IMG/VR virus record: IMGVR_UViG_3300042511_000879
Span: 1-64,000 of that record
Length of the DNA stretch: 64,000 nucleotides
Strand: one strand, 5' to 3'
Part shown: one piece after another, positions 24,478 to 47,366 of the stretch
How positions within the stretch are numbered: position 1 is the stretch's first letter
Layout: every line of letters begins with the position of its first letter
Notes under the pieces: generated by a model
What the model was told of the DNA's origin: nothing
The model's input: the letters and a program-made list of their open reading frames with translations, nothing else
The model's database searches: none
Translations under genes and position numbers: made by a program

Positions 24478-24870
24478 TTATAATGTTTTTACTAGACGAA
24501 CTGAATAGGCTTGCCCTGCTCCAGTAAAGTATTCTTGTTTTCCTGTACCAAAGTTTTGAACCCAAACTGCATTTTTACCAAATGTTTCAGAAGACATGTA
24601 AAACGCGTTCATTCTAAGGTTAGGTAGTAGGGTAACATTTTGGTACATTGTTTCCAATTCATCTTTAGTCGGTACTCTCCAACCTTTGCCCATTTTTTTG
24701 GCTAAACGATTTGCATTAACCAATTTAAGGTCTGCGCCATTAAGTTCAGTTAAGTCGCGTTCTGCAACTTCTATATTACCAATCGTAACAGGATTTCCTA
24801 TTACGTCTGATGCTGTATATAATCCAGCGATTTCATTAACGAAATCTTCAAATAATTTAATGTGTTTCAT
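24478..24870 (-). CDS. CTS-leader protein with DUF1566/Lcl-like C-type-lectin-fold domain
   Basis: MKHIKLFEDFVNE leader; GWRVPTKDEL..YMSS..VWVQNF..G..SVRLVK. Confidence 0.7.
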   Translation of the reverse strand: MKHIKLFEDFVNEIAGLYTASDVIGNPVTIGNIEVAERDLTELNGADLKLVNANRLAKKMGKGWRVPTKDELETMYQNVTLLPNLRMNAFYMSSETFGKNAVWVQNFGTGKQEYFTGAGQAYSVRLVKTL

Positions 24871-24871
24871 A

Positions 24872-25204
24872 TTATTTGTACTCATTTTCATATTTAGACT
24901 TTAACTCTTCCCATGCAGCTTTATACTTTGCTGGAATTTTATCAGGTCCATAAACTCTAGAATTAGATTTTTTAGATGAACCTACTTTATAGTTTTCACC
25001 TGTGTAGTATTCCATAAATTCATCTCCAACCTTTCTAGAACCATCGTCTTTAACGTAGATACCATAAGTAATATAAGTATCTGAATCTAAATGTCCTTCT
25101 AAAATATCACAAGATGGATTGTGATTTTTATGTGAGTTAAATTGATAATCAAGAAATTTTACGGCTTCGTTGATAAATTGTTCAAATAATTTAATGTGTT
25201 TCAT
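24872..25204 (-). CDS. CTS-leader hypothetical protein
   Basis: MKHIKLFEQFINE leader; late promoter upstream. Confidence 0.75.
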   Translation of the reverse strand: MKHIKLFEQFINEAVKFLDYQFNSHKNHNPSCDILEGHLDSDTYITYGIYVKDDGSRKVGDEFMEYYTGENYKVGSSKKSNSRVYGPDKIPAKYKAAWEELKSKYENEYK

Positions 25205-25248
25205 TATCGTTTTTTATTTTTATTAATTATATATCTGATTTTGATATA

Positions 25249-25285
25249 CAAATATAAACATTAATTTTTAAACCGGAAAACTTTT
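25249..25285 (-). promoter_or_regulatory. Bacteroidota-type (TAnnTTTG) early promoter (representative copy)
   Basis: TATATTTG at 25249-25256; TATATTTA variants at 1046, 35206 and 47371 with similar upstream T-rich/TGTC elements. Confidence 0.55.
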
Positions 25286-25303
25286 TATGTTAAATTTTAA
25301 AAT

Positions 25304-25334
25304 AAAAAAGCAGGGAGTAGCGAATTCCCTGCTT
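25304..25334 (-). terminator. Intrinsic terminator after nrdA
   Basis: AAGCAGGGA/TCCCTGCTT stem plus T-tract. Confidence 0.78.
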
Positions 25335-25394
25335 AACACCTCCGTGAACTAGTCCCGGTCCTAAAATGCAATCATGTTTCAGATTGCCGGTTCA

Positions 25395-27020
25395 TTATGC
25401 CGAACAGCTATCGCATTCAAGAATATCTCTTGCAAATGATTGCGCTGAACTTTGGCTAAATTGGTAGTATAATGTTTTAACCCCTTCCTCGTGAGCATAA
25501 AGATACAATGTATTAATATCTTTAGCGGGTACTGAAGGATGAATCATCAAATTTAGTGACTGTGATTGGTCAATAAAATGTTGTCTTTGAGCCGCTTGCA
25601 GTACAATTTCTTTTGGACTGATTTCAACGAAAGATTTAAAAACTTCTTTGGTTGGAAAGTCTAAATGTTGTACACTTCCGTCTCTCTTTAAGATTCCTTC
25701 CCAAACTTCTGGTGTATTTAAACCATATTTGTCCAGCTCTTGAATTAAGAAAGGATTTTTGTAAATTGTTTTTGACTTGGCCAAATCTTTAATAAAATAA
25801 TTAGATTTGATTGGTTCAATTCCCATACTTACTTGTCCTAAAATAAATGAACTACTTTTGGTTGGAGCAATCGCAACTAGAGTAGTGTTAGCGTATCCTG
25901 GTCGGATTGATTTGTAACCTTTCTCATCATGCAATAATCTAGAAGCCGCTTCACTCTTTTCTTTTAGTGTTGAAAAGATTTCATGATTCAATTGTTTTGC
26001 TTGAAGTGAATCAAAACTGATTAATTTAGATTGAAACAATGAATGATAACCAAGGACTCCAAGTCCTAAGGCTCTGTGGTCATTTGCAAATCTCCATGCT
26101 CTTTTCATTCCAGGCATATTATAAGATTTATTTATGAACTCATTCATAACTGCGTTTAAGAACATTGTATAAACTTCGATAGCATCAGTTTCTTTAATTT
26201 CGTCCCAGTGTAATAGGTTAATAGAACCTAAACAACAAACAAATGAATTGAATGAATCTGTTGGTAATTGAATTTCACTACAAAGGTTACTTGCAGTAAT
26301 ATCAAGTCCTAATTCTTTGTATGGCGAATTATTGTTTGAGTTATCTTTAAACATAATATATGGAAAACCAAACTCATTACGTCTTTGAATTACCTTAGCC
26401 CAAATTTTACGTTTTTCAGCATCTCCTGATTTCATATCAGCGATCCAAGCATCAGTAACAGTAACTCCATATTGTAGGTTTTGAATTGGATTCCCTTCAG
26501 TTCCAATATCTAAGAATTCTAAAATGTCATTATGTTCAACTGGTAACCAAACCGCGCATGCTCCTCTTCGGGCTTCTGATTGTTTACAAACATCAACTGT
26601 TGTATCATATAATCTGGCATAGTGTACTGGACCATCGGCAGTTCCTCCTGTCGAAATCTTAGTACCTCTTGCCCGGATGTTTCCTAAAAATGCAGAAGTT
26701 CCTCCTCCGTATTTTGACATCATTCCAACTTCTCTACTTCCATTTAAGATACTATCTAAAGTATCATCTACATTACTTCCATAACAACTAACCGGAAGTC
26801 CTTTGTCTTTTCCATAATTAATCCAAACTGGAGTTGATAAACTATAGAATCCTCTAGTCATATAGTCCTCAAACTTTTTTGCAAATCCTTCAATTTTTAA
26901 GTCTTTTTCTGCGGTATTTGCTACATCTTTAATTCGCTGCTCTGGAGATTCAGTAATATAACCTCTAGATAAAAATGTTCTACTGTCTTCGTTAAGCCAG
27001 TAATTCTTCTCGTAATCCAT
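25395..27020 (-). CDS. nrdA: Ribonucleotide reductase class Ia alpha subunit (short, no ATP cone)
   Basis: PVSC, GGGTS, SNLCSEI, LGLGVLG, IAPTKSSS, DQSQSLN, KTLYY, C-terminal CDSC. Confidence 0.93.
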   Translation of the reverse strand: MDYEKNYWLNEDSRTFLSRGYITESPEQRIKDVANTAEKDLKIEGFAKKFEDYMTRGFYSLSTPVWINYGKDKGLPVSCYGSNVDDTLDSILNGSREVGMMSKYGGGTSAFLGNIRARGTKISTGGTADGPVHYARLYDTTVDVCKQSEARRGACAVWLPVEHNDILEFLDIGTEGNPIQNLQYGVTVTDAWIADMKSGDAEKRKIWAKVIQRRNEFGFPYIMFKDNSNNNSPYKELGLDITASNLCSEIQLPTDSFNSFVCCLGSINLLHWDEIKETDAIEVYTMFLNAVMNEFINKSYNMPGMKRAWRFANDHRALGLGVLGYHSLFQSKLISFDSLQAKQLNHEIFSTLKEKSEAASRLLHDEKGYKSIRPGYANTTLVAIAPTKSSSFILGQVSMGIEPIKSNYFIKDLAKSKTIYKNPFLIQELDKYGLNTPEVWEGILKRDGSVQHLDFPTKEVFKSFVEISPKEIVLQAAQRQHFIDQSQSLNLMIHPSVPAKDINTLYLYAHEEGVKTLYYQFSQSSAQSFARDILECDSCSA

Positions 27021-27042
27021 TTAGTTTAATTTGTTTTTAATT

Positions 27043-28020
27043 TTAAAATAAGTCGTCTTCGGTAATTGCCTTAGACTTTTTGTTGTAGTCAATTGATTTT
27101 TTGTAGAAGAAATCACCTTCTTTTGTTGAAAGAATCTCAACATCAAACCATAGAGATTTTTCAATTTCTGTAAAATCAACTTCAAATACTGGTTTCATTC
27201 CAATTCGTTGTAGGGAATTATTAAAACGATTTTGAATAAATTGTTTGATAGTTTCTTTTGGTAAGAAATCAAGTTCACCATTTTCAAAGATCCAATCAAG
27301 AATTTTAACCTCTGCTAGGTATGCTTTCTTACATGCAGAATCTATAAGTTGTTCAAATTCCTCATCAAACCATTCTGGATTTTCTCTTCTAATAATGTTA
27401 ATTAATTCAGATCCGAAGTTTCCGTGGATTTCCTCCTCTTTACTTGTCGCTTCAACTACATTTGAAATACCTTTAAATAGATTTTTTTCTTTGTTAAAGG
27501 ACATCATAATAAAGAATTGGCTAAATAGACTAACATGTTCTATAAACAATGAAAATAGCAATACGGATTTCGTATACATTTTATTGTCCTTACTTCTTGT
27601 ACCATCCAAATACTTTGTCAAGTATGCAATTCTATCTTTAATTGCTGGAATCTCTACTACATGTTGGAATTCATCTTCTAATCCTAGGATTCTTAATAAT
27701 TGTGCGTAAGCATCTTTGTGTCGCACTTCACTTTCGGCAAATGTCATACCAACATCTCCAATTTCAGTGATTGGCATTCTTTTGTAAAGATCTGCCCAAA
27801 AAGTTTTAACATTAACTTCAATTTGTGCAATTGCTAGCATCGATCTTTTAATTACTTCACGCTCTGGATCAGTGACTTTAGTCATAAAATCATCGATATC
27901 TGTTGTAAAATTAAATTCGGTGTGAATCCAATATGAGTGACGGATTGCGTCTTTGTATGCTAATAGTGAAGGGTATTCGTAAGGTAAAATATTTACGCGT
28001 TTTTGAAAGATATTGCTCAT
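27043..28020 (-). CDS. nrdB: Ribonucleotide reductase class Ia beta subunit
   Basis: W..TE, ESEVRH..AY, IEHVSLFSQF, EEEIH, DFF. Confidence 0.93.
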   Translation of the reverse strand: MSNIFQKRVNILPYEYPSLLAYKDAIRHSYWIHTEFNFTTDIDDFMTKVTDPEREVIKRSMLAIAQIEVNVKTFWADLYKRMPITEIGDVGMTFAESEVRHKDAYAQLLRILGLEDEFQHVVEIPAIKDRIAYLTKYLDGTRSKDNKMYTKSVLLFSLFIEHVSLFSQFFIMMSFNKEKNLFKGISNVVEATSKEEEIHGNFGSELINIIRRENPEWFDEEFEQLIDSACKKAYLAEVKILDWIFENGELDFLPKETIKQFIQNRFNNSLQRIGMKPVFEVDFTEIEKSLWFDVEILSTKEGDFFYKKSIDYNKKSKAITEDDLF

Positions 28021-28056
28021 TGGTGATAATTTATTTTAGAAGTTTATATATAAGTT

Positions 28057-29454
28057 TTATTGGAGCAGTTTTTTCAACCGGTCAGCTTTTGTGTAATATT
28101 CATAAGAAGTTTTTTTATAATCTTTACGTTGTGCATATAGGTCACTTAATATCTTTCTGAGAATAGAATCTTCGGTCTTATAAACTACGCCATTATCACA
28201 AACGATAACCTCTTTATTTTTTCTGCGCTCTTCAATTTCACTTTTATAAATCTTTTCAATATATGCATCGGGAGATATATTAAATTGTCTCATTATCGAA
28301 GGATATAGTGAAGCAAAATCGAATGCACTTACACCTTCATAGAATCCTAAGATTGGTTCTTTTACAAATGCTCCAGCATATTGGCCATCTTTTTGGCTAT
28401 CAGATTTCTCTTCACTTCCAATTCGCATTCCTTGCTCAGCAAGTTTTCTTGCCATAATTGCTTCAGTAACTGCCACTGGAGAACTTGCTTTGTATAACGG
28501 CATATTTGTAATATTTGCCAGTGTTAGTAGTACCTCCATCGACTTCAACTTCTGGTCAATGTAATATACAAGCACTGAATCGACAACATTGTAATATATG
28601 TACTTGACAAAGTTATCCCGGTATAAGTCCTGTAGTGATCCAGTGAACTTGATTTTGTTAACGTTCAAGACTTGACTTGAAACATAATCTAATGAATTGG
28701 ATTCTTTAACTTTTACAGTTCGGTCATATTTGTCATACAATTGCATATAGTCAAGAATTCCGATATGAAGAGGACGACCATCTGTATGATCGATTGAATG
28801 GGTCATACCAACTTCTTTAATATCGATTTGAAGTCTTTTACATCGATTAACGATATACTGCCAGTCATAGTTGATAAAATTCCACCCAGTCATCATAGGA
28901 AACTTTGGTAAGAATTTCATTAAGAATGTGTAAACCATATCGTACTCAGACTTGAACTTATGGTACTTAAATTCCCAGTCCTGGTCAAAATCTTTGAAGT
29001 ACTCATTAGTATCGTCTTGAATCTTTTGGATTTTATCTGAAGCCATATCTTCCAGTCCAAGCACGATTGCTTTACGGTCTGGAGTAATTATTGAGAATGA
29101 AAGAATTCTACTTTTGGCCTCTTCGGCTTTTGGAAAGCCATCAACAATTTCAGTTTCAATATCGACAAAATAAGTCTTTGGCATATTATATGCTGTTAGG
29201 TCTTTTTTGTCCTTCTCTGAAAGATTATCTAAAAAATAAAGAATTGAAAACTTATTAAATTGTTTTCCATATCCTAATTTAACAGGACGGCCATCCCAGT
29301 TTTTATAGTCTGGACTGGCCGCTCTGTCTTTTTCATCACAAACATACCAATTTTGGAATTTATCCACTGGGTATTGTTTAAATGCTACTTCTCCCTTGTC
29401 ATTATAGTATGAAATGATAACATCTTTTTCACGCTGCTCGATGTCAAGTATCAT
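28057..29454 (-). CDS. Family B DNA polymerase, N-terminal subunit (3'-5' exonuclease + motif A; split gp43, part A)
   Basis: VDIETE, GWNFINYD, YNVVD, YAGAFV, motif A FDFASLYPSI; ends within the fingers at QRKDYKK. Confidence 0.9.
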   Translation of the reverse strand: MILDIEQREKDVIISYYNDKGEVAFKQYPVDKFQNWYVCDEKDRAASPDYKNWDGRPVKLGYGKQFNKFSILYFLDNLSEKDKKDLTAYNMPKTYFVDIETEIVDGFPKAEEAKSRILSFSIITPDRKAIVLGLEDMASDKIQKIQDDTNEYFKDFDQDWEFKYHKFKSEYDMVYTFLMKFLPKFPMMTGWNFINYDWQYIVNRCKRLQIDIKEVGMTHSIDHTDGRPLHIGILDYMQLYDKYDRTVKVKESNSLDYVSSQVLNVNKIKFTGSLQDLYRDNFVKYIYYNVVDSVLVYYIDQKLKSMEVLLTLANITNMPLYKASSPVAVTEAIMARKLAEQGMRIGSEEKSDSQKDGQYAGAFVKEPILGFYEGVSAFDFASLYPSIMRQFNISPDAYIEKIYKSEIEERRKNKEVIVCDNGVVYKTEDSILRKILSDLYAQRKDYKKTSYEYYTKADRLKKLLQ

Positions 29455-35180: not shown

Positions 35181-35230
35181 AATATGTTTGTTTAAATTAG
35201 ATATGTAAATATAATACAAAAAATCGACAT

Positions 35231-35276
35231 AAAAAAATCCTGACTAAAAAAGTTATTAACAATTTTGTCAGGATTA
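35231..35276 (-). terminator. Probable terminator closing the non-coding RNA region
   Basis: AATCCTGAC/GTCAGGATT stem with T-tract on the minus strand. Confidence 0.55.
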
Positions 35277-35589: not shown

Positions 35590-35955
35590 TTATTTAATTA
35601 TTACGAATAAACCTCCTCTAGATGACGCAGATTCAGTGTTACCATTAGCTAAAGTAACTTTAGATAGTACTTCACCACCTAATTCTTTAGCAACTTCTTC
35701 TGCTACTGAATTTACTTCAAAGAAAACAACACTACCTCCATTATCTGCTAGTATGTTATATCCATCGCCTTCTACTACATTTGGCTTTTTAATCATTTTA
35801 TTGATAGGACCATTTACTGATTTACTATCAATGTTAATAATGTAAGTACCACTGCGACTTTTATAAGCTTTTGGACTTTGAGCATTTTCTATAGGCTCAT
35901 ATACATTATGGTCCGATTCATTTACAAAATCTTCGAATAGTTTAATGTGTTTCAT
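35590..35955 (-). CDS. CTS-leader hypothetical protein
   Basis: MKHIKLFEDFVNE leader. Confidence 0.75.
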   Translation of the reverse strand: MKHIKLFEDFVNESDHNVYEPIENAQSPKAYKSRSGTYIINIDSKSVNGPINKMIKKPNVVEGDGYNILADNGGSVVFFEVNSVAEEVAKELGGEVLSKVTLANGNTESASSRGGLFVIIK

Positions 35956-35983: not shown

Positions 35984-37408
35984 TTATACAATTGGAGCGT
36001 ATCTCTCACTCAAAATTGTTTTATCCATTATTTGTTGTGGAGATTCGATATCTCCACCAAGTAAACTTGTCATAATTGCTGGAGAGAATCCAGAAACTAA
36101 TGCAGTTCCTTTAGCATCAAATGCAACTGGTACTCCTCCGTTTCGGGATTGAATATTCCAGTAAACAATTTGAGGTACCCTGTAACCTGCATCGGCATAA
36201 AGGGTTTCAATCATCTTCTGAGCAGTTGGATTCCAGTGGCTTTCTCTACCGTAACCTTTTCCTGTTGCCGAATTAAATTCCATATCCGATAGGATTAAGA
36301 TTTTGTTTGGCATTTTGTCTTGAGACAATTTGTGCTTAGTGGCCTGATCTAGGATCAGTTTGAATGTAGCCTCAAGATCTGTTGACATTCCCCAATCAGA
36401 GTCTGACATCTGTGTGTAGCGATCATTCAGTGAGCCACTTAATACTTGTAACTGTGGTTTACTTGAGAATGTGATAAATGCATCTTTGAAAAGACCTTCA
36501 TTTCTTTCAGAAATATAAAGACCTAAAGAGATTGCAACATTCATACAAGTTACAGTTTTACTTCCACCAGCTGGAGTTGACATAGAACCTGAAACATCTA
36601 CTACTGGTAAAATCATATCGTTTGCACCTTCCAAATAGTTTGGTAAGGCTTTCCATTGTTCGTTTGCTACGGTTGCATTTCCACGTTCTAATGATGTAAT
36701 AACGTCATAAGGATAAACTGCACCTGCATTAATTTTAGCCTCACCTTTTACAAGAGAAGCAATGTACGCTGAATAACTTTCGTATGCATTTTTACCAAAG
36801 GCTTTTTGGTATCTAGCCGAAGCAACTGAAGGTAATTTACCAAAATCAATAGAATTCCAGTCTTTAGCACACATTTTAGTTTCAACTACATTAGTTAAAC
36901 CTACAAGAGATTTTCTGTATTGTTTTGGGGACATTCCAGTAAATTTACGTAACTTTTCAGCTATTGGACCTTTACGTGGCATCCATTTAGCACATAAACC
37001 GTTTTCGTTGATTAATGCATCAGAGATTAGGGTGAATGCATCTTTTTCAAGATATGTTCCTGATAGGGCTAATAAGTCATCCCAACGACCATACTCTGAG
37101 ATTAAGTGTAAGTTTGGTTTAAGTACTAAGTCGTGGTTTTCTGCTAAATAAACTAAAATGTCCTTGAAAACTTGACGTTCTCCAGCTCCACCTCGAACAT
37201 CTCTGGCCCAGAAAAGTAGTTTCATAGCACGCTTCGGATCTTCATTAAATGCTTTAGAGAAAGTTGCAATCAAACGTTGCTTGTCTTGTCCTCTCATAGC
37301 TCCAATGTTAAAGAAAAGGTCAACGCAAGCATTCAATGAACTCGAGTTTGTCGCCATTCCATTTTCAGTTACTATATCTTCTTGTCTTAATGCGTCTAAG
37401 AATTCCAT
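35984..37408 (-). CDS. Ro60/TROVE-like protein with C-terminal vWA domain (DUF2828 family)
   Basis: TENG, RDVRGGAGER, YGRWDDL, AKWMPR, MIDAS VVDVSGSM, ILSDMEFN, IVYWN, VSGFS. Confidence 0.85.
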   Translation of the reverse strand: MEFLDALRQEDIVTENGMATNSSSLNACVDLFFNIGAMRGQDKQRLIATFSKAFNEDPKRAMKLLFWARDVRGGAGERQVFKDILVYLAENHDLVLKPNLHLISEYGRWDDLLALSGTYLEKDAFTLISDALINENGLCAKWMPRKGPIAEKLRKFTGMSPKQYRKSLVGLTNVVETKMCAKDWNSIDFGKLPSVASARYQKAFGKNAYESYSAYIASLVKGEAKINAGAVYPYDVITSLERGNATVANEQWKALPNYLEGANDMILPVVDVSGSMSTPAGGSKTVTCMNVAISLGLYISERNEGLFKDAFITFSSKPQLQVLSGSLNDRYTQMSDSDWGMSTDLEATFKLILDQATKHKLSQDKMPNKILILSDMEFNSATGKGYGRESHWNPTAQKMIETLYADAGYRVPQIVYWNIQSRNGGVPVAFDAKGTALVSGFSPAIMTSLLGGDIESPQQIMDKTILSERYAPIV

Positions 37409-37761: not shown

Positions 37762-38538
37762 TTACTTTAAATAACCATAATCATCTAATTTTCCATTATG
37801 ACGAAGTTCTTGGTATCTACTACCTAAATCAAAAAGAGTACCAAAATGATTTCCATTTTTATCAAAGAAATAAATGGTATCTCCATCTTCTTTATATTCG
37901 TATCTTTCTTTCATATTTCGCAAAAGATCAGTTTTTAAACCAACTAAAATTTTACTTTTAGAATTACTATAATCTACGATTTTTTGCACAGATTCATTAA
38001 TAAATTGTTCAAAGGATTTAAACTTCTTTAAGAACTCTTTACGTCTCTTTTTTTCCTCTTCCTCATCCTCTTTGTCATCTTTCCCAAAATTTGGAATGTC
38101 TCCAGAACCGACTTCAGTTTGTGAAGGTAGAGCAGTTGCTCCCATTCCTCCAATACTTTCAGGAGAAACCATCTCATCTAATTCATGATAACCGTCGTTT
38201 GCCTGTTTAATATAATTATAAGACTGTGAAATATGGTCTTGCAACCATCCTGGTAAGTCCTTTTCTTCTCTTCCAATTTTCTGAAGTAATTCACCAACTG
38301 CTTTTGAAATTGCATTAAGTTGACTCATTGCCATTCCAACTTCATGGTCTTCAGCTTCTTTAACATATTCAGGAAGTCCTTCGTGTTTTGTACTTGCAAA
38401 ATCTTTCAATTGTTGAAGTGTCATAGAATCTGCAAGGTCTTTAACCTCTTGGCTTGCATCTTTAGGGTCCATATCTCCTTTTTTAAGAGCGTATGCCATT
38501 CCCATTAATTGTTGTTGTGCTTTACTCGTACTTGGCAT
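37762..38538 (-). CDS. Multi-module protein with DUF3008-like N-terminus and an internal CTS-like motif
   Basis: MPSTSKAQQQLMGMA...LKDFASTKHEGLP; internal KSFEQFINES. Confidence 0.65.
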   Translation of the reverse strand: MPSTSKAQQQLMGMAYALKKGDMDPKDASQEVKDLADSMTLQQLKDFASTKHEGLPEYVKEAEDHEVGMAMSQLNAISKAVGELLQKIGREEKDLPGWLQDHISQSYNYIKQANDGYHELDEMVSPESIGGMGATALPSQTEVGSGDIPNFGKDDKEDEEEEKKRRKEFLKKFKSFEQFINESVQKIVDYSNSKSKILVGLKTDLLRNMKERYEYKEDGDTIYFFDKNGNHFGTLFDLGSRYQELRHNGKLDDYGYLK

Positions 38539-38539: not shown

Positions 38540-39076
38540 TTACTTTTGGTCTATTTGTATGATTTCAGAACCTCTGATTTCAACGTTATTTTCTCCAATT
38601 TCGGCATCATATCCACCGTAAATGTCTTCTCCACCTGCAATTGCAGTATTTAACATACCTCCTAATTTGTTCTTAAATTTAGAACCATCAACATCATCCA
38701 TAAAACCAATATTAATTACAAAGTCTCCGGGAATTCTAATATGTAAAGGAGCACCATCTCTATTCAATCTATTAATAGTATCTGGTTCCCATGAAAGATT
38801 TAGTCCTTTGACGTGTACATATACAACTTGGTCCATATCTTTTACAACCTTTTTAATTTCATCTAGGATGATTTTTTCGGCAGTTTTGGTAAAATCCCAC
38901 CATGCACCATTAACCTCTTCTAAAGTATCTGCTGCATCTCCTTCAAAAGTGGCAGTTTCAATTTCTTTTTTAAAAGCCTGCATAACTTTACCAATAATAC
39001 CTTTAGAGGTATAAGGTCCAGTCATTCTGTATGCTTTTTCATTTAAGAAATCTTCAAATAATTTTATGTGTTTCAT
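38540..39076 (-). CDS. CTS-leader hypothetical protein
   Basis: MKHIKLFEDFLNE. Confidence 0.75.
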   Translation of the reverse strand: MKHIKLFEDFLNEKAYRMTGPYTSKGIIGKVMQAFKKEIETATFEGDAADTLEEVNGAWWDFTKTAEKIILDEIKKVVKDMDQVVYVHVKGLNLSWEPDTINRLNRDGAPLHIRIPGDFVINIGFMDDVDGSKFKNKLGGMLNTAIAGGEDIYGGYDAEIGENNVEIRGSEIIQIDQK

Positions 39077-39522
39077 TATTTTATAGGATTTTTATTCATT
39101 GCAGCGTCTTGGTTTTTCTCTTGCCAATTGTAAGATACTTTGTCTTCAGTAATAGGTCCACCTTTTGCCCATGTGTAACATGTTCGAGCTGAATGGCATT
39201 TAAAATGATGCATCCAACAGTATCCTAATTTACCATCGTCGTCACTAATCTCGCCAGGCATACAGTCTAACATTCTTGGTGATATGTCGAAAGCAACACA
39301 ATTTCCACATGTTGATTTTTTAGCAGCTTCAACACTAGTATTCCAATGATCAGCTATATGCTCCCAAAAACCTGCAGGTTCATCAACATTAAGAGGTCCA
39401 TATTCAATAAAGTCTGCTTTAATTGCGCGGTCTCTATTATTAGTGTTAACCTTTAAGTCCTTTGTCGGTACAGGGCAACTAGTTGCTTCTTTAAATTCTT
39501 CGAAAAGTTTTATAGTTTTCAT
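39076..39522 (-). CDS. CTS-leader Cys-rich protein, HiPIP-like metal-binding motif
   Basis: MKTIKLFEEFKE; CGNC..F...GYC..H.FKC...TC..W. Confidence 0.65.
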   Translation of the reverse strand: MKTIKLFEEFKEATSCPVPTKDLKVNTNNRDRAIKADFIEYGPLNVDEPAGFWEHIADHWNTSVEAAKKSTCGNCVAFDISPRMLDCMPGEISDDDGKLGYCWMHHFKCHSARTCYTWAKGGPITEDKVSYNWQEKNQDAAMNKNPIK

Positions 39523-39523: not shown

Positions 39524-40117
39524 TTATTTTACCTTAGGGTATTTAGTCTTAATTTCTTTATAGAATTTCTTGTAATTAGTAGCATTCATGTGGTCTTCAG
39601 CTGCTCTAAGCAAATCATCTAAAGAAGTCCATTGAACATCCGCTAATTGATCTTGTGTTGTTGAAACTTGAGCCATACGATCTAAAATTCCAAAAATAAT
39701 ATCATCTGTTAATTTTGTTTCGGTACTTGGTTTTTCTTTACCTGCTGCTCTTTTAAGTGTCCACCAATCAACTTTCTTTGGAATTTGATATGATACAATT
39801 CCTCTTTGTTGGTCATTGGGACTAGTTTCTCCAGGTTTACCAATATTACTTTTAATATTATCCAGGTCTAAGTTATCATCAAATCCTTTTAATGCCTTTT
39901 GAATATCTTTAGTTGAATCTATATCTGCCATATCTGGTTCACTCCTAAGAAACATTCTATCAGTTGAACTCATATTAAAATAAATTCCTTTAACAGGTGA
40001 AATAGCTTTGATAAATTGTTTTTGATACTCATCAGAATCTAGACCATTGTTATATCCTGGAAAGGTTTGCATCCTAGCTTCACCTACAAATTGTTCAAAT
40101 AATTTGATATGTTTCAT
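39524..40117 (-). CDS. CTS-leader hypothetical protein
   Basis: MKHIKLFEQFVGE. Confidence 0.75.
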   Translation of the reverse strand: MKHIKLFEQFVGEARMQTFPGYNNGLDSDEYQKQFIKAISPVKGIYFNMSSTDRMFLRSEPDMADIDSTKDIQKALKGFDDNLDLDNIKSNIGKPGETSPNDQQRGIVSYQIPKKVDWWTLKRAAGKEKPSTETKLTDDIIFGILDRMAQVSTTQDQLADVQWTSLDDLLRAAEDHMNATNYKKFYKEIKTKYPKVK

Positions 40118-40118: not shown

Positions 40119-42860
40119 TTACCAAGCGTAATTTTTAGCGTCTACTTTCTTAACGTAGTCAACGATTGTTTTAGAACTTTCTTTCATTCTACCTTCATAG
40201 AATTTTCCGCTATAACCAGATGCAGCCTCTTTTTCAATATCTACAGCGTATGCAACATATCTGTTATATTCATCTAGGATGTTTTTCATTAAGTTAGAAG
40301 CATCGCTCATTTTGATTTCTCTACCTCTAGGGTCTAGTCCAATAATAAGTTCTCCATATTTTCCTTTTTCAGCTTTAGTTAGGGCATCTTTGATTTGTGT
40401 AGCAAGAGTATCAATAGCTCCTAATACAATTGAATCCATCGGCATTTCTGAAGCTTTTTGGGCTAATATTTGGTTATAACGGGCTTTGTTTTCTGCTTTA
40501 AAGTCTTTATCACTTTTAAAAGCAGTAGCTCCACGTTTATCATCGGCTCTTTTTGATACTAATGACGTTGTAGAATATCTTGCTTTAAGGACATCTAAGT
40601 CAATAACATAAACAGTATCGGCTAATTCAGCTACTTTAGTAAGTGAAGTGATTCCAGAACCATCGTATCTTTTACTGTCTCTTTTGTCAAATCCTGCTGC
40701 ATCTTCTCTAGAACTTGCTTTTGATATAGTTTCAGTTTTTGAGTATCTATTATATCCGGTAGAGTACCATTCATTTTGTCCATTAGTCATTGCTAATAGG
40801 GTGTTTGATTGGATAATTCCATTATTGTATCTACTTGGAATTCTACCAGCTTCAATATATGGATTCTCTTTTTGGTTAGTTACTATATAGAAGTAAATTG
40901 CGTTAGCTCTTTTTTCTTTACGAGCAGTTTGAGGGTCCATTTCAATAATGTCATAATCTTCGATTTGGTCAATTGCCAATTTTGAGAAGTTATAGAATGC
41001 TCCTGCAAGGTCTTTAGTACCTGCACTTCCTACAGAGAAAAGGTTAGATAATTTAGCACTTTTAAATGCCTCGTTTAATGTACCTTCATTTAATTTGTTT
41101 TCAACAAATTCTGCGAAAGATTCGTAAATAAATTTTGTTTTCATATCGTTGTTATTTTTGTTTTCGTCTAAGTCAATAACCCAAGCATATTCAACGTACT
41201 TGATAGCGTCTTCAGGATTTACATCCCATTTAAGTGCCGCATCTAATACGATTTTTCTTGTAATTTTGCTATTTGGGTATTTTGCAATTTCTTTTTCAAA
41301 TCCTCCAGGAACCCAAATCTTAGGTGCCTTAGTAGTAGCTTCAAATATTTGCTTTAATCTTCCTTTTAATAGTTTTTTAACCTCTATTGACATATTGGTT
41401 TTATTATTATCGAATTCTTTAGAATTTCCTAATTCTTCTCTATTAAAAGCATTTAATTTATCATCAAAATACTCATCAGCATCAAGGTCTTCTATATTAT
41501 CGTCAACATCTAACCATTCATCATCTACAAATTGTTTAGCTAATTTTTTATAGTTTAATCCTTCATTCATAGTAGCTTCAGAAACCATAACATTTTTAAG
41601 GATTCTTGAACCTGTTTTTGATAGGGTAATTCCATCTTCAGATACATTAAAACACTGAGCGTTTCTTCTCAACCATCTTTTAGAATCTGTAGTCATTTCT
41701 TTAAGAATATTATTAAAATCTTCTTGAGAAAGTTTACCATCTTTAATAGCTTCTAGCATTTTGTTACGAACTTTAGCAGCTTTACCTACAGTAACTGCAG
41801 GATTTTTATCAGTATAATGCCTTTTGATTGTGATGTTTCTTTCATTAACTACTGATTCTTTAATAGCATTTTTAACATCGCCTAATGTAGATATTTCCAT
41901 GTTGGTTGCAACTGTTAAAAAATCAAATGCATCTTCATATTCTCCACGATCCCAGAGTTTGTCAAATTCTTCAATATCATCTTCATCACCGATTAGAGCA
42001 TATCCTGGATCAATTCCAATTTCTTTATTAATAAAGTCGATAGTTTTTTTAATGTCAGATTTTTTAAATCCAGTTTCATTAACTACTGATTCATTTAAAC
42101 CAAACTCTCTGATATCGTTTTGTCCATTGTCAAATGATTTTTGAATAGCCGCTAATGCTTCTTTTCTATCGCTTGCAGATTCAAACCCAATTTCGTCATC
42201 GCTAAATGCTTTTGAATATTTTTTCCATGAGTCTTTTGATAAATCAGCAACTTTTCTTAAGTTGATTACTGTAGATTCTATACGGTATTTTGAAGCAGTT
42301 CCGGATGGGTAATTGTTAGTTGATAAACCTAAAACTAAATTAGCCTCATCTAAAGAAGATTCTTTAATAATTTTATCATCTTTATGGAAAATGTATTCCA
42401 TTTTCTTACCAGTTTTCTTAAATTCACCGCTATAAGAAACTTCTCCATCTTTATTTTTAAAAACTTTATCAACTACAAATTCTCCATCAGATGAAGCGTA
42501 AGGAATTACAATACTTCCTTTTTTAACAGTAGCTTCATTTGTAACTGATTCTGATAATTTATTAAGATTTTTAACAATAGTATCTACTGAATCATTCCAT
42601 TTACCATAAACAGGACTTCCAGGTACGGCATTGTTTACAACATCACCATTTGCATGTATAGTATAAGAACCTCCATCGAACTCTTCTCCATTACAATCGA
42701 TGTCGAATGAATCCTCTTCTAATGTTCTAGTGTTAACGGTGCATTTGCTACCATCTGCCTTTGAAAGGGCTTTAGCATAAAGTTCTGCAACTTTTTTAGT
42801 TTTTTCTACAGATAACCCCATCGGTTTAGAGCTTTCGTTTAAGAATTGATCAAAATTCAT
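40119..42860 (-). CDS. Modular internal-head polyprotein (913 aa)
   Basis: MNFDQFLNE leader; repeated ESVTNE/ESVVNE linkers; late promoter. Confidence 0.65.
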   Translation of the reverse strand: MNFDQFLNESSKPMGLSVEKTKKVAELYAKALSKADGSKCTVNTRTLEEDSFDIDCNGEEFDGGSYTIHANGDVVNNAVPGSPVYGKWNDSVDTIVKNLNKLSESVTNEATVKKGSIVIPYASSDGEFVVDKVFKNKDGEVSYSGEFKKTGKKMEYIFHKDDKIIKESSLDEANLVLGLSTNNYPSGTASKYRIESTVINLRKVADLSKDSWKKYSKAFSDDEIGFESASDRKEALAAIQKSFDNGQNDIREFGLNESVVNETGFKKSDIKKTIDFINKEIGIDPGYALIGDEDDIEEFDKLWDRGEYEDAFDFLTVATNMEISTLGDVKNAIKESVVNERNITIKRHYTDKNPAVTVGKAAKVRNKMLEAIKDGKLSQEDFNNILKEMTTDSKRWLRRNAQCFNVSEDGITLSKTGSRILKNVMVSEATMNEGLNYKKLAKQFVDDEWLDVDDNIEDLDADEYFDDKLNAFNREELGNSKEFDNNKTNMSIEVKKLLKGRLKQIFEATTKAPKIWVPGGFEKEIAKYPNSKITRKIVLDAALKWDVNPEDAIKYVEYAWVIDLDENKNNNDMKTKFIYESFAEFVENKLNEGTLNEAFKSAKLSNLFSVGSAGTKDLAGAFYNFSKLAIDQIEDYDIIEMDPQTARKEKRANAIYFYIVTNQKENPYIEAGRIPSRYNNGIIQSNTLLAMTNGQNEWYSTGYNRYSKTETISKASSREDAAGFDKRDSKRYDGSGITSLTKVAELADTVYVIDLDVLKARYSTTSLVSKRADDKRGATAFKSDKDFKAENKARYNQILAQKASEMPMDSIVLGAIDTLATQIKDALTKAEKGKYGELIIGLDPRGREIKMSDASNLMKNILDEYNRYVAYAVDIEKEAASGYSGKFYEGRMKESSKTIVDYVKKVDAKNYAW

Positions 42861-42884
42861 ATGATTTTTATATTTATTTATGTT

Positions 42885-44756
42885 TTATATATCTTTGTTA
42901 ATAAATTGTTCGAATGTCATGATTTCATTAGTAACTGATTCTGTAACAACTCCCATTGCATCTTCAATTTTAGATTTAAGTTCATTATACATCGAATGAA
43001 CTGCCTTTGGTGTTAGATTGTTAAATTGTTTTTCATTACCATCTAATAGAGCATTTCTAACTGCAGTAGCCGAAATATCATCGTCAGTTCTTGGAATTTC
43101 AAAAAGTCCAAAATCAGCTCTACAATTTAATTGGTCTCTATAAGAATCATTATTAACTTGATAACCATAGCTTGTCATTCTATCACTTCCCGTTCCCCAA
43201 AGTACTGGCTCATATTTAGGTCTCATTTCATTAAACATGATATCGATACCTCCAGTTGGAACTACAAATATTTCTTTTAAGAATGGATATTGTTTTTTAA
43301 CATGATTGAACATATCGATTTGGGTCTTTTCATCGTATGGTCTGCTAAATTCATCACCTTTCTTTTTGGTTTTTGATTTAACTAGGAATACAACTACTGG
43401 AAATCCATTCTCTTTATGTATAGTTTCTAAAACTTTTGCATGGCCTAATGTAAACGGCTGGAATCTTCCAACAAACATATTTACTGGTTGTTTTCCTTGT
43501 TCAACATGAGTAAGTTTAAGTGCCTCGTTTAAATTAACTGAAGATTTGATTTTATCACGCAACATAAAATTTTGGTAGTCATAGATTGCATTTTCATCAG
43601 TGTTTTCAACAAATATTTTATCGTTGATTTTTTCAATAATTTCGTTTAAACGTTCCATAGTATCTTGGTCTATTAAATCTGAAGTTTTAGTTCTTTTCTT
43701 TCTAAAAGAACCTAAAATCATTTTAAAAAGTTCTGCTAGAATATCGTTAGAAACATATTTTAAGGTTTTTTCATCGGTAATATACTTTGAGTTTAATTTA
43801 AAAGATTCTGCTGATGAAAATTCAGCGCTTTCAAAATTAACTCCAATATATTTTGAAGAGTTCTTGTCAACATATTCATTAAATATAATTGACATTATTT
43901 CAAGATATCGATAATCTGCTCGGTCATCTTCAAGCTGTACTTCATCGATCTTAAATTGAGTTATAAATTCTAAAAAGTCGGTGACTGCAATTTGATACAT
44001 GTGACTTGAAGAGTTATCAATTGGATTTTTTCTTGTAAAATCTTCTAATTTAAAAGATTTTATAGATTTTTCATCGATAAAATTAACAACCAATCCATCG
44101 AATTCCTCATCAATATCAGAATTTAGGGCAGTTTCAAAAGCACTAGGATTAAAAAGTTTAACTATTTTACTGGTAAAACTTAATTTGTCCTTTGTTTCTG
44201 GTAAATAGTCGAATGATTCACTAAATTCTCTATCACTCATTCCAAGCAATTCTAGTAACTCATCTCTTTGTAATTGAGATAAATAGCCATCAAATAATAT
44301 GCTTGGCTGTTGAACATCAAGAATTTTTGCCCATTTATTTAAGATTACCGGGTCATTAATAGTTTTCTTAACTTTATTACCTTCTCCAAGTTGTTGGATA
44401 TGCGTTAAGATTAAATTATTTTTTGGAGTTTTTATGTATTTAATTTTAGATACATTAACTTCTGGTAGGTATTCAAAACCAAATCTCCAATCAATTGGCA
44501 TTTGATTTTTAGTAGCACTTGGTAAACTTTGCATGTAGTTGATTGCAATCTCATATAGAGATATAATTGTTCTATCAACTAAATTTAGTTTGTCTGAATT
44601 TGAAGATTTAAAATATTCAAATCCATCAAGATTTCTTTTAACAAGAAATGTAGGCGCAGAAACTTTCTCAGTTACTAACACCCTATTTTTTAACATCTCA
44701 ATAAAGGTTTCTCTATTGGTTTCGTTAAAATACTCTCTTAATTTTTGTAATGCCAT
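42885..44756 (-). CDS. Cytidyltransferase-like (HIGH nucleotidyltransferase) protein with degenerate ligase-like N-terminal domain
   Basis: FVGRFQPFTLGH, GSDR, ISATAVR; N-terminal VTEKVSA...FDGLVV. Confidence 0.75.
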   Translation of the reverse strand: MALQKLREYFNETNRETFIEMLKNRVLVTEKVSAPTFLVKRNLDGFEYFKSSNSDKLNLVDRTIISLYEIAINYMQSLPSATKNQMPIDWRFGFEYLPEVNVSKIKYIKTPKNNLILTHIQQLGEGNKVKKTINDPVILNKWAKILDVQQPSILFDGYLSQLQRDELLELLGMSDREFSESFDYLPETKDKLSFTSKIVKLFNPSAFETALNSDIDEEFDGLVVNFIDEKSIKSFKLEDFTRKNPIDNSSSHMYQIAVTDFLEFITQFKIDEVQLEDDRADYRYLEIMSIIFNEYVDKNSSKYIGVNFESAEFSSAESFKLNSKYITDEKTLKYVSNDILAELFKMILGSFRKKRTKTSDLIDQDTMERLNEIIEKINDKIFVENTDENAIYDYQNFMLRDKIKSSVNLNEALKLTHVEQGKQPVNMFVGRFQPFTLGHAKVLETIHKENGFPVVVFLVKSKTKKKGDEFSRPYDEKTQIDMFNHVKKQYPFLKEIFVVPTGGIDIMFNEMRPKYEPVLWGTGSDRMTSYGYQVNNDSYRDQLNCRADFGLFEIPRTDDDISATAVRNALLDGNEKQFNNLTPKAVHSMYNELKSKIEDAMGVVTESVTNEIMTFEQFINKDI

Positions 44757-44777
44757 CTCTTTGTTTTTATTAATTAA

Positions 44778-45245
44778 TTATGATGAACTTTTTGATACTT
44801 CAAATACTCTTCGTTGTTCGTCTAAATAAACTTTAGTATCTACCCAAATAGAACCTAACTTTGTTTCTTTCTTAGGGTCAGTTATATCAGTAAATGTCAA
44901 TAGGGTTACATTAACCTCTTCTCCTCTTTTAGACTGTAGTGCTAATTGATAATCATTCAACCAATACTGTGAATTGTGAATTCTGTATTTTGGAGTATCG
45001 ATGATATTTCCATGTGGTTTTACTTCAAAATATTGATAGTGAACAAACATAGTTTCTCCTTCAAAATCCCAAATCCATTCCATTGCCGTATCTGTTGTTT
45101 TTGCAGTAAGTGGCATTAATTTCTTAAAGAATGTTTCGTCTAATGAATTAGATTTCTTTAATACTTCAGGTTTAAAGTTATTAATTGTTGATTCATATAG
45201 TTGTCTAGTTTCAACAAATTTTTCGAATAGTTTTACGTGTTTCAT
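44778..45245 (-). CDS. CTS-leader hypothetical protein
   Basis: MKHVKLFEKFVE at 45245. Confidence 0.7.
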   Translation of the reverse strand: MKHVKLFEKFVETRQLYESTINNFKPEVLKKSNSLDETFFKKLMPLTAKTTDTAMEWIWDFEGETMFVHYQYFEVKPHGNIIDTPKYRIHNSQYWLNDYQLALQSKRGEEVNVTLLTFTDITDPKKETKLGSIWVDTKVYLDEQRRVFEVSKSSS

Positions 45246-45246
45246 T

Positions 45247-46536
45247 TTATCTTCCATATTTTATAATTCCCATCAACTGATTAATCGCAGCGAATGTTCC
45301 TGTTAATTTGTACATGTGTCCTTTGTATGAAAATACAATACCTTCAGTCGGTATAATAGATTGGATTCCTCCAATTCTTTCAAGTCTATCAAGTTCTTTT
45401 GCAACTTTCTCGATTTGAGTAAGGTCTCCATTTAGTTTAATTTTATCGGCTTCAGTTCTGATTTCATTATGTAGCCTTTGCATTTCTTTTTCAGGAGAAG
45501 CAGCAACAAAGTTACTTGCATTCTTTAAGATAACACTTCCAAGTTCTAAGAAAAGGTCTTCAAATGGTCTAATGTTTTCTTTGAATTTTACTTTAAAGTC
45601 TTCTTTGTCAAATTTCTTAACAGCATCTGATTGTTGTTTTGTTAATTCTTTGTCTAAAGAGCGCATGTTTAATGTTTTCTTATCATCATATGCCCATCTA
45701 AGTAATAATCCTTCTTTAATATTTTGTGGATATTCTCCGAATAAATTTTCAATTTGCTCTCTCCACCACATTTCATGGTATCTTGCAACTGCATCAGCAT
45801 CTGTTAATTTATAACGATTTTTAAGAGCATCAAGTTTTCCTAGGAATTTAGACTGATTCTCTTCAAAATTCATATCTTTTTGTAGTTTAATAACCTGCGG
45901 AGGGATTATTGTAAATGTTTTTCCAATATCAGCGTTTAGGGATTTAAGTACTCCAGTAACACTTTTTGCCGCACTATTGTCATCTCCAACTATATTTCCT
46001 GCACCATCAGTTTTCTTGATACCATGGAATTGAATTACATCAACATCGTAGTGAATTACATTAGGATTTGCAGAATATATCAACTCCATGTTCATGAAGT
46101 TTAGGCCATTCTGGAACACTTCCTCTTGTGTTTTTGCCGGCAACTTTATAAGCAGGGTTGCTAAATCAGCGGCTGCAAATTGGAAAGTATCTTGTACTAA
46201 TTTGCTAGCATGTCCCTCAAATTTATTTTGGAAATCCTTAAGGCTCATAGGATTTTGCAACTCAGTTTTATTTCTGGCAAATTTAACTTCACCATTTTGA
46301 ATAGTTGCAAATACGTTTTGACCGTCTGTTTTTTCAGTAGGTTCCTCTTCAAAGTTCAATTCACCTTGAAGTCCACCAATAATCATATTCTTGAAGTCTC
46401 CGAATGTTAGGTCATTATTATCGAATGGATGGGACATGTGTCCAGCAGCTCCACCTTCTAATAGTAACTGTTCATTCAATTTAACTTCATACTTTTCAGT
46501 TATGAATCGATTAAAATTAAGGATTCTTGTTTTCAT
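45247..46536 (-). CDS. Polynucleotide-ligase-fold nucleotidyltransferase (DUF6267-like)
   Basis: EGGAAGHMSHPFD, motif I TEKTDG, motif IV PTEGIVF, YKLTG.F..INQ. Confidence 0.65.
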   Translation of the reverse strand: MKTRILNFNRFITEKYEVKLNEQLLLEGGAAGHMSHPFDNNDLTFGDFKNMIIGGLQGELNFEEEPTEKTDGQNVFATIQNGEVKFARNKTELQNPMSLKDFQNKFEGHASKLVQDTFQFAAADLATLLIKLPAKTQEEVFQNGLNFMNMELIYSANPNVIHYDVDVIQFHGIKKTDGAGNIVGDDNSAAKSVTGVLKSLNADIGKTFTIIPPQVIKLQKDMNFEENQSKFLGKLDALKNRYKLTDADAVARYHEMWWREQIENLFGEYPQNIKEGLLLRWAYDDKKTLNMRSLDKELTKQQSDAVKKFDKEDFKVKFKENIRPFEDLFLELGSVILKNASNFVAASPEKEMQRLHNEIRTEADKIKLNGDLTQIEKVAKELDRLERIGGIQSIIPTEGIVFSYKGHMYKLTGTFAAINQLMGIIKYGR

Positions 46537-46543
46537 ATTTTAA

Positions 46544-47092
46544 TTACTTTGCAACTCTGTTGCTTTTAATGTTTTCCATTGCGATATCATCAATCAATCT
46601 TGTAAAAGAACTTAGGGTTGCAGCGGTATAAAATCCATCTTCACCAGGACCTGCATTGTTTGCTCCTACTTTATAAGCTTGAATGTGTCCAGCAAGTTCT
46701 AATGCTGCATCTCCCCATCCGGTGTCATTTCCTCCATTAGATTTAGCACGTTTAATTGCATCATTAGTAAGTGCTACTAAATCGTTTGCACCTCTAAATG
46801 CTTCGGGTTTTTTACTACTTTTCTTACCAGAAACGTTATTGTGTTCAATATCATCAAGGCCCATATTATTAACCAGTTCTTGGAATAATGATGGTGTTTG
46901 TGGACCATACCATTTGTCTGCCTTTGGGTCAATAGTACTATCAATATATTTTCCAAGGTCTGTTAGGTAATCAAGTACATTTTGACCATTACCGCCACGT
47001 GCAAATATTTTTTTAGAGGCGTCTTTTACGTATTTTACGTAGTCATTTTTTCCTTCGTTAATAAATTGTTCGAATAATTGTATGTGTTTCAT
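46544..47092 (-). CDS. CTS-leader hypothetical protein
   Basis: MKHIQLFEQFINE. Confidence 0.75.
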   Translation of the reverse strand: MKHIQLFEQFINEGKNDYVKYVKDASKKIFARGGNGQNVLDYLTDLGKYIDSTIDPKADKWYGPQTPSLFQELVNNMGLDDIEHNNVSGKKSSKKPEAFRGANDLVALTNDAIKRAKSNGGNDTGWGDAALELAGHIQAYKVGANNAGPGEDGFYTAATLSSFTRLIDDIAMENIKSNRVAK

Positions 47093-47093
47093 A

Positions 47094-47366
47094 TTATAAA
47101 TTGCTTAGTTTATTGTTTAAATCAAGTATTGCAGAATTAATTTTTATTTTCTGATTATCAAGTTCAAGAAGTGACATTTTAAGAGTTGCTATTTGCGCTT
47201 GAATTGCAGATTTTGGGTCATCTACCTTTTGATTCAAATCATTTACTTTATTTCTAAGTTCTTTTCTTTTTAGGAATATGTCGTGTGATTTAGCCGACAA
47301 ATCAGATCTTGCATCTGTATAGTCAGATTCATTTAAGAACTCTTCAAATAAGTTAATGTGTTTCAT
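47094..47366 (-). CDS. CTS-leader coiled-coil protein
   Basis: MKHINLFEEFLNE at 47366. Confidence 0.72.
   Translation of the reverse strand: MKHINLFEEFLNESDYTDARSDLSAKSHDIFLKRKELRNKVNDLNQKVDDPKSAIQAQIATLKMSLLELDNQKIKINSAILDLNNKLSNL

Follow-up and report, generated by a model that had tools for sequence, protein, structure and literature searches.

We analyzed a 64,000-nucleotide stretch (hereafter the window; unlabeled coordinates are window positions) that comprises bases 134,133-198,132 of the 234,467-bp IMG/VR virus record IMGVR_UViG_3300042511_000879. The record, G000, is the genome of an uncultured jumbo phage with 34% GC and an estimated completeness of 77% (CheckV), and its minus strand holds nearly all genes. 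Our subject is a 13-residue leader peptide, M-K-H-I-K-L-F-E-Q-F-I-N-E, which heads 13 genes of the window and ends in [IVL]-x-Glu, the cleavage motif of the T4 protease gp21. The nine strong leader starts listed in a preliminary description of this DNA (24870, 25204, 35955, 39076, 39522, 40117, 45245, 47092 and 47366) are all present, every one on the minus strand, and so are its five weaker starts (7853, 42860, 46536, 50520 and 56102), an internal copy in the 37762-38538 gene and a C-terminal copy in the 42885-44756 gene. Open reading frames (ORFs) were simple picks, made without a trained gene finder.

The family is far too frequent to have arisen by chance. The pattern [FY]E[EDQ][FY][VIL]xE falls within the first 30 residues of 21 genes genome-wide, whereas 300 residue shuffles gave 0.02 on average and 2 at most, and the leader DNA motif of the preliminary description has 8 matches in the window and 0 in 100 shuffles. 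With looser versions included, about 31 genes and one large polyprotein carry the leader, together 8.5% of the coding capacity of the genome. The earlier count of 15 or more tagged proteins is too low, the more so as the clade holds more than 100 cargo families. A logo built from 234 distinct leaders in the loci that we fetched places I/V/L at P3 in 225 of 234 and Glu at P1 in 228, with Asp in the other 6. Position 7 is F in 212 leaders and Y in 22, position 10 is F in 226 and Y in 8, and F7, F10, I/V/L11 and E13 rank with the best-conserved residues of the leader.

These proteins form a real clade-wide family with a T4-like leader that is predicted to be cleavable, a family that is expanded relative to T4 and that includes polyprotein linkers and occasional C-terminal tags. 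The preliminary interpretation holds in part. Its core, that the leader is a T4-like capsid targeting propeptide cut after Glu by a gp21-type protease, is supported by several independent lines of sequence evidence, and we consider it rather probable that the leader is a propeptide of this kind, serving both targeting and cleavage.

Genes that carry the leader

The leader genes, polyproteins and head genes described below all lie on the minus strand. The gene at 24478-24870 begins with MKHIKLFEDFVNE (24832-24870), followed by a mature part with an Lcl_C-like domain; the first ATG of this ORF, at 24891, is probably not the start. At 24872-25204 stands a leader protein of 110 residues with orphan cargo and a candidate late-promoter motif (motif B) upstream. 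The leader protein at 35590-35955 (121 residues) could be followed through a gene-content map of relatives: the whole gene is missing at its place in three of them, with ends in AT-rich spacers, and occupies another slot in a fourth. Inside the same cargo island, at 35984-37408, lies a conserved backbone gene whose 474-residue product matches phrog_850 ('RNA-binding protein') at E 6e-153.

The DUF3008 protein at 37762-38538 carries its leader internally. KSFEQFINE (nucleotides 37993-38019) follows a charged linker and precedes a 76-residue cargo domain, and the part behind this internal leader differs among orthologues, where it is one of at least four domains or is replaced by a stop codon. 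The 178-residue leader protein at 38540-39076 was modeled with AlphaFold2 (AF2; pTM 0.79). Residues 1-23 form a flexible arm that includes a short helix (residues 3-11), the globular part begins at residue 24, and the model has no PDB or BFVD match at E <= 0.001.

Further leader proteins are headed by MKTIKLFEEFKE at 39076-39522, a Cys-rich orphan of 148 residues that lies elsewhere in the genome of the relatives G001 and G037; by MKHIKLFEQFVGE at 39524-40117, a 197-residue protein whose cargo corresponds to the C-terminal portion of a longer protein at another locus (L014); and by MKHVKLFEKFVE at 44778-45245, whose orthologue in the relative G036 has the canonical MKHIKLFEQFINE. MKHIQLFEQFINE heads an orphan of 182 residues at 46544-47092, and MKHINLFEEFLNE a protein at 47094-47366 that has 90 residues counted from the leader Met. 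A weak case is the 122-residue protein at 55734-56102, which starts with MKTFLDYIAE, a 10-residue leader of the same length as the T4 capsid targeting sequence (CTS), MKTYQEFIAE (PMC8442874).

Two neighboring genes encode larger proteins with the tag at opposite ends. The enzyme-like protein at 42885-44756 (623 residues) has a C-terminal cytidylyltransferase-like domain and ends in ESVTNE followed by IMTFEQFINKDI, a tail that is kept in seven orthologues, down to 54% identity; to judge from Atlas models, its N-terminal half may be RNA-ligase-like. The DUF6267/RNA-ligase-like protein at 45247-46536 (429 residues) has a diverged N-terminal leader, MKTRILNFNRFITE, and a KxDG-like motif, EKTDG. 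The two may share an RNA-ligase-like (DUF6267) fold, a likeness drawn from an Atlas comparison for the 45247-46536 protein and extended to the N-terminal half of its neighbor. Packaged enzymes of the RNA-repair type would be unusual. In the 462-kb huge phage LR756500.1 (24% GC) a protein with a canonical leader (MKFLKSYEEFLNE, then LILEGGSYGH) is similar at its N-terminus to the 45247-46536 protein. Judged by eye it is probably the orthologue, and if so the weak leader of the window protein is genuine.

The head module, its protease and the polyproteins

The window also contains a head module in T4 gene order (the order in T4 was checked): portal, small acidic protein, protease-scaffold fusion and capsid protein. 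The portal protein at 7875-9464 belongs to the gp20 family (Portal_T4, E 5e-70) and the major capsid protein at 3819-5351 to the gp23 family (Gp23, E 6e-41). At 5510-7432 a prohead protease of the gp21 family (Peptidase_S77) is fused to a long, heptad-rich, scaffold-like tail. It matches PF03420 (Peptidase_S77) at 44.7-46.1 bits, against a cut-off of 27, and the head maturation protease family phrog_207 at E 1.5e-40. Its segments GELDHP (His70) and ISSRAAG (Ser125) align with two Ala positions of the T4 gp21 structure 5jbl, of which the first is His in native T4 gp21, and these two positions would be the catalytic residues. His70 and Ser125 are invariant in 48 distinct orthologues, and the protease of the head module is apparently active.

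The protease itself carries cleavage-type sites of the form [LIVFM][NT]E: RVNE164 and LTE529 are kept in 48 of the 48 orthologues, VTE335 in 41 and VNE614 in 37. RVNE164 stands directly after the catalytic domain, and its invariance there fits the autoprocessing of their own C-terminus that is known for gp21-type proteases (PMC9026906, PMC5694885). We also considered MANLINE, at the N-terminus of the capsid protein, as a cleavage site and rejected it: some orthologues have Ser in place of this Glu, and the segment is similar to the beginning of the T4 gp23 propeptide. Outside the window, at G000:C1:57227-57625, lies a second small Peptidase_S77-like ORF (132 residues; 31 bits, over the cut-off), which is also found in two near-identical relatives; a diverged protease paralogue has been reported for SPN3US-like giant phages (PMC5694885).

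Between portal and protease, in the slot of the T4 core genes 67/68, the gene at 7503-7853 encodes an acidic protein of 116 residues with the leader-like start MKIIKTFEEFT. The small gene in this position has a leader-like N-terminus in nearly all of 61 head modules fetched from IMG/VR, and in several lineages the leader is canonical, for example MKYLRLFEQFIKE.

Two polyproteins extend the leader family. The one at 40119-42860 (913 residues) begins with a short leader, MNFDQFLNE, has ES-V-[VT]-NE linkers at residues 109, 262 and 340, and carries a relic internal leader, FAEFVEN, at 582, followed by TLNE597. Its length ranges from 411 to 913 residues among relatives, and its last domain is found elsewhere as a stand-alone leader protein. 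The other, at 47431-50520 (1029 residues), has the conserved N-terminus ISSFKSFTE, ES-x-V-x-E linkers at 241, 471, 599, 688, 770, 826, 883 and 946, and VVSE407; two of its modules are stand-alone leader proteins elsewhere. The pattern ES-[VT]-[VT]-[NT]-E is almost confined to leader-bearing proteins, with seven copies in the 1029-residue polyprotein (eight if Ser is admitted at the fifth position) and three in the 913-residue one.

Where a module occurs in both formats, the two align in register at the predicted cut. FINE|SVNVKYW of a stand-alone protein matches VVTE946|AFDANYW of a polyprotein, FVNE|SSEE matches VVSE407|SKEA, and a leader with SLNE|AFAS matches the relic FAEFVEN with TLNE597|AFKS of the 913-residue polyprotein. 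Orthologues of the 1029-residue polyprotein have gained and lost modules exactly at the linkers, and in one relative a tandem leader gene is fused in frame, with its Met and leader retained as the junction. Since the same cleavage motif joins the modules, one leader could carry several cargo modules.

The features of the protease and the linkers bear on another role for the N-terminal peptide, that of a tag for a machine other than the capsid: the ClpA/ClpB-like AAA+ protein of the phage (genome 13848-15821), a degradation signal, or a localization signal. AAA+ unfoldases do use N-terminal amphipathic tags. Moreover, the genome encodes Clp-like and DnaJ-like chaperones, both of which are named for the moraphages, a proposed lineage of jumbo phages (PMC12619734). 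A tag of this sort would leave unexplained the strict terminal Glu and the gp21-type [IVL]-x-E, the in-register linkers, the leader carried by the gene adjacent to the protease and the conservation of sites within the protease, and we regard it as very improbable.

Leader DNA, cargo turnover and spread

The preliminary description had noted that the leader is also conserved as DNA; this conservation does not exceed what the peptide demands. In an alignment of 22 leaders, synonymous codons alternate freely (TTT/TTC 11:11, CTA/TTA 8:12, and likewise CAT/CAC and AAT/AAC), and the 30 nt upstream are A/T-rich only, without conserved sequence. The same comparison was made in two relatives, G006 (256 kb, with terminal repeats, 32% GC, 22 leader genes) and G011 (246 kb, 26% GC, 29 leader genes). 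Codon identity at the same residue between leaders is 0.66 in G000, 0.71 in G006 and 0.72 in G011, where codon usage predicts 0.58, 0.64 and 0.65, and the longest exact run between pairs of leaders has a median of 8-11 nt. The leader peptide is retained across genomes of 24-34% GC, with differing codons. Synonymous sites thus vary about as codon usage predicts, and selection therefore acts on the leader peptide; neither the codon identities nor the exact runs revealed a DNA signal past the peptide requirement in the N-terminal leaders.

It might be supposed that the conserved element acts as nucleic acid, in translation initiation, as a regulatory RNA or as a recombination site, and that the peptide is a by-product. 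The DNA motif is indeed highly non-random and leader DNA repeat families are 70-86% identical, and in T4, where MKTYQEFIAE occurs twice in the genome, the DNA of ipII and ipIII is identical over the CTS. The DNA of the leader copies here, by contrast, has diverged. A DNA or RNA element is ruled out in our view by the synonymous-site variation together with the unconserved upstream sequence; the retention of the peptide with different codons, and of in-frame internal and C-terminal copies conserved as peptide, argues in the same direction, and we give this explanation almost no weight.

The companion suggestion, that leader DNA is an anchor for recombination, divides in two. For the N-terminal leaders it is weak: their identity is what peptide and codon bias predict, and one whole-gene insertion or deletion ends in AT-rich spacers. 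It fares better at the internal ESVVNE linkers, whose DNA is 86-90% alike, and at the DUF3008 internal leader, where junctions are reused exactly in module gain and loss. This reuse of coding junctions may reflect short-homology recombination or, alternatively, the survival of only those joins that are in frame and cleavable.

That the cargo proteins are otherwise unrelated, as first described, is upheld. All-against-all BLASTP of 31 mature parts, which span 53-900 residues, gave one weak match (E 0.005). The 234 distinct leader proteins from the loci that we fetched form 104 clusters by BLASTP, of which 66 are singletons, and their median mature length is 138 residues. Pfam and PHROGs gave almost nothing on cargo function and returned scattered different domains only (Lcl_C, DUF3008, cytidylyltransferase, DUF6267/RNA-ligase-like). 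Leader genes do occur as tandem arrays (one in G006 has 14 members), as duplication would give, and in principle all tagged genes could be a single paralogous family whose C-terminal parts diverged past recognition. The BLASTP results and the distinct domains rule this out, the tag is also found internally and at a C-terminus, and we find the idea barely credible.

Cargo content varies fast between related genomes. None of 28 leader cargos of G000 has a BLASTP match in G011, as against 62 of 283 other genes; in G006 the corresponding figures are about 10 of 28 and 174 of 283. Despite this turnover the leader itself is retained in genomes of 26-34% GC. Six close relatives that we mapped have a conserved backbone, to which both polyproteins belong in every relative, and the slot between the 913-residue and DUF3008 proteins holds from 0 to 6 different leader-type genes.

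Some of the cargo may be scaffold destined for degradation and expulsion, the polyproteins being the foremost candidates. A more sweeping version would have the tag send proteins to the prohead and be cut there, with most tagged proteins being expendable core or scaffold and the acidic polyproteins degraded and expelled before packaging, like T4 gp22, gp67 and gp68. T4 core proteins are cut to fragments that leave the head (PMC9026906), and the polyproteins, with 4-9 cleavage-type sites, would fall into pieces of 56-90 residues. Their place in the conserved backbone, the mostly acidic cargo and the presence of the same leader on the core gene beside the protease are what such scaffold would show as well. 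Most tagged proteins, however, have a single site and a folded domain, like the one modeled at pTM 0.79, and some are enzyme-like. Their turnover is far faster than that of structural genes and is typical of accessory, conflict-related genes, and the polyprotein modules are interchangeable with stand-alone tagged proteins. We therefore consider it unlikely that most of the tagged set is expendable scaffold.

The leader is widespread among phages. Its DNA pattern matches more than 117 IMG/VR viral contigs, which look like fragments of genomes of ~250-300 kb (CheckV), and of 35 long contigs 21 encode an S77 protease in a frame of 467-747 residues, among them the only two with a completeness of at least 90%. 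LR756500.1 has a capsid protein that is 52% identical and a variant leader, MKYI[KL]EYEEF[ILV]xE, on at least 20 genes (loci L247-L266), several of them in tandem arrays and on both strands, for example at 11706-17016 and 313382-317720. This version, with Tyr (YEEF), came to light when N-termini were clustered and the pattern was widened. In 185,579 prokaryote genomes the leader DNA pattern matches one contig, and a general bacterial or Bacteroidota N-terminal motif is thereby ruled out. The single match (L245, SKFV01000236.1) is a 3.9-kb contig of a Pseudomonas sp. metagenome-assembled genome (MAG); probably a piece of phage DNA that was binned with the MAG, it is no evidence on the host. Our literature search found no paper with the leader motif string or linking a CTS to these phage groups.

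Probable capsid targeting, expression and host

T4 offers the closest comparison. Its protease gp21 cuts after L/I-X-E and its CTSs have 10-19 residues; in the CTS of IPIII, mutagenesis has shown that residues 4 and 7 matter for targeting and residues 8 and 10 for processing, which Asp at position 10 blocks (PMC9026906). An ungapped alignment from the terminal Glu sets T4 YQEFIAE over FEQFINE and brings T4 positions 4, 7, 8 and 10 onto F7, F10, I11 and E13, so that both have aromatics three residues apart and then an aliphatic residue. This match of positions is suggestive, coming as it does from an ungapped alignment, and is not proof of homology. In both phages a short N-terminal peptide that ends in [aliphatic]-x-Glu is found on unrelated proteins (IPI, IPII, IPIII and Alt in T4), the genome encodes a gp21-family protease, a gp20 portal and a gp23 capsid protein, and variable cargo genes lie in plastic loci. 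Both also have C-terminal propeptides, in Alt and gp21 of T4 (PMC9026906) and in the 42885-44756 gene here. The differences are that the T4 CTS has 10 residues and about 4 tagged genes, as against 13 residues and about 31 genes; that T4 cargo is basic, whereas the cargo here is mostly acidic or neutral; and that T4 has no counterpart of the ESVVNE-linked polyproteins, while the phage studied here has a protease-scaffold fusion and a probable Bacteroidota host.

Other systems share some of these features. The phiKZ-like giant phages, with their inner-body and ejection proteins, are jumbo phages with a diverged gp21-like protease (phiKZ gp175, SPN3US gp245 and that of 201phi2-1) that cuts many head proteins after Glu. 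They have dozens of packed internal proteins, redundant propeptide sites and C-terminal self-processing of the protease, and SPN3US, like the phage here, has a second protease paralogue (PMC5694885). Their motif, however, is S/A-X-E or A-X-E, their propeptides mostly exceed 100 residues and they have no shared short leader across unrelated proteins (PMC5694885, PMC9026906). The leader of the present phage is short (13 residues) and stereotyped, its motif is [IVL]-[NT]-E with I/V/L at P3, and Pfam places the head genes clearly in T4-like families.

Shuffling by PeSL elements in the hyperplastic regions of T4-type phages likewise involves accessory genes that are gained, lost and moved among close relatives at short conserved junction sequences (PMC2839356). 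Those junctions are intergenic cassettes of ~100 bp with promoter and stem-loop, whereas here they are coding (the ESVVNE linkers and the internal leader), and the N-terminal leader DNA offers exact runs of just 8-11 nt.

Encapsulins, finally, load unrelated cargo into an HK97-fold shell through a short terminal peptide, usually C-terminal and uncleaved, that binds the shell protein. The short shared terminal peptide is the point in common; no encapsulin gene is involved here.

How the leader might work can be outlined from these parallels. An amphipathic helix at its N-terminus would attach to the prohead core during assembly, probably through the scaffold-like tail of the protease-scaffold fusion, and in doing so would carry any fused protein into the prohead. 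The gp21-family serine protease would then cut after the last Glu of [IVL]-x-E and free the mature protein inside the head. In the polyproteins a single leader would bring in several modules, later cut apart at ES-V-V-N-E, and a few proteins would bear the tag at the C-terminus, behind a cleavage site. Core binding, cleavage, retention in the virion and injection are steps that we infer from sequence. Because the tag looks and behaves in sequence like the T4 CTS, it probably marks proteins that are loaded into the virus head.

Several observations weigh against this interpretation. The small gene between portal and protease is linked to the T4 core genes by position only, since T4 gp67 and gp68 themselves have no CTS-like N-terminus. 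The 13-residue version of the leader is absent from Lak-A2, PAU, PTm1 and T4, and because Lak-A2, PAU and PTm1 share the head-gene types, this type of head does not require the leader. Tenacibaculum phage PTm1, the nearest isolate, has no N-terminal motif family at all, so it could not serve as a proxy for virion proteomics, and no cultured relative with virion proteomics carries the leader. A loose form of the core motif is not enriched over background at C-termini or internally, and for this reason we claim only those C-terminal and internal tags that are conserved in orthologues. Three leader genes have an early-type upstream motif (motif A). In contrast to T4 internal proteins the cargo is not basic, with a median pI of 5.8 and a value above 7 in only 9 of 31, and some 31 kinds of cargo per head would be far more than in T4.

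Injected proteins act before phage gene expression and include anti-restriction and host-takeover factors such as T4 IPI and Alt; normally they are found only through virion proteomics of cultured phages. It is conceivable, if somewhat doubtful, that the cargo described here consists of injected effectors for anti-defense or host takeover, as the preliminary description proposed. In that form the proposal is not supported: the cargo is orphan and not basic, and some of it may be scaffold. A broader proposal, quite possible and still tentative, is that the capsid-targeting code of T4 is ancient and can be read from sequence alone, and that Bacteroidota-type jumbo and huge phages of 230-460 kb, a whole clade without cultured members, rely on a 13-residue form of it to package 20-30 proteins per genome. 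These proteins would come from hundreds of families with rapid turnover, RNA-ligase-like enzymes and cleavable polyproteins among them. If so, the CTS mechanism would be much older and wider than the T-even phages, and metagenomic sequence could yield a direct list of the proteins that uncultured phages inject. Tag and matching protease would together give a defined pool of candidates against Bacteroidota defense systems. The polyprotein format and the C-terminal tags are new and would be informative on how cargo is recruited and evolves. The tag and the ESVVNE linker would amount to a portable module for packaging and release, which engineers might exploit to load proteins into such capsids.

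The upstream regions offer some indication of timing. The genes for the portal and the protease, three tail-fiber genes and nine leader genes or polyproteins have a motif 25-35 nt upstream, GATATATAA / (G)ATATATAA, the (G)ATATATAA form being found in the upstream regions of 5510, 7875, 2606, 14246, 59585, 62546 and others. Many other leader genes stand in tandem behind a gene preceded by GATATATAA, and the motif also precedes the gene for the small subunit of ribonucleotide reductase (27043). The T4 late promoter is TATAAATA; the resemblance of GATATATAA to it makes late co-expression plausible, and we regard the motif as a candidate late promoter.

A second recurrent element, TTG(A/T)TTATATTTACAT..TAATTAAAACA, occurs in the window at 35204-35237 and 47369-47402 and at ~33 sites genome-wide, some 26-35 nt before the ATG of mostly small genes without assigned function and often behind a GC-rich hairpin and T-run; short BLAST matches indicate many copies in the genomes of relatives. 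It is like the Bacteroidota -7 box TAnnTTTG and may be an early promoter with an upstream terminator.

Shine-Dalgarno-like motifs precede only 4% of genes, and the nearest named relatives infect Tenacibaculum and Prevotella; a member of the Bacteroidota is therefore the likely host. The moraphages are proposed as an aquatic lineage with a T4-like structural core, a prohead core protease, ClpA-like and DnaJ-like genes and a predicted Bacteroidota host (PMC12619734). The gene content of our genome, set against them by description only, is compatible with that lineage; in the published description the term 'N-terminal' does not occur (PMC12619734). The DnaJ-like gene (G000:C1:5188-6021) and the ClpA/ClpB-like AAA+ gene lie outside the window and were judged by N-terminal sequence.

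Two further features of the genome deserve mention. Its contig ends (G000:C1:1-1246 and 233192-234467) repeat each other over ~1.25 kb at an identity of only 90-96%, with one leader gene inside. This points either to a terminal repeat that is imperfect or to an assembly that spans population variants. In the window, three consecutive tail-fiber-like genes (59585-61828, 62546-63934 and 63963 onward) share a near-identical N-terminus, M.I.LK.I...D.DNIKLD.[VI]NYNFDQL[VI]ANGGG, presumably a common attachment domain and thus a second N-terminal family, unrelated to the leader.

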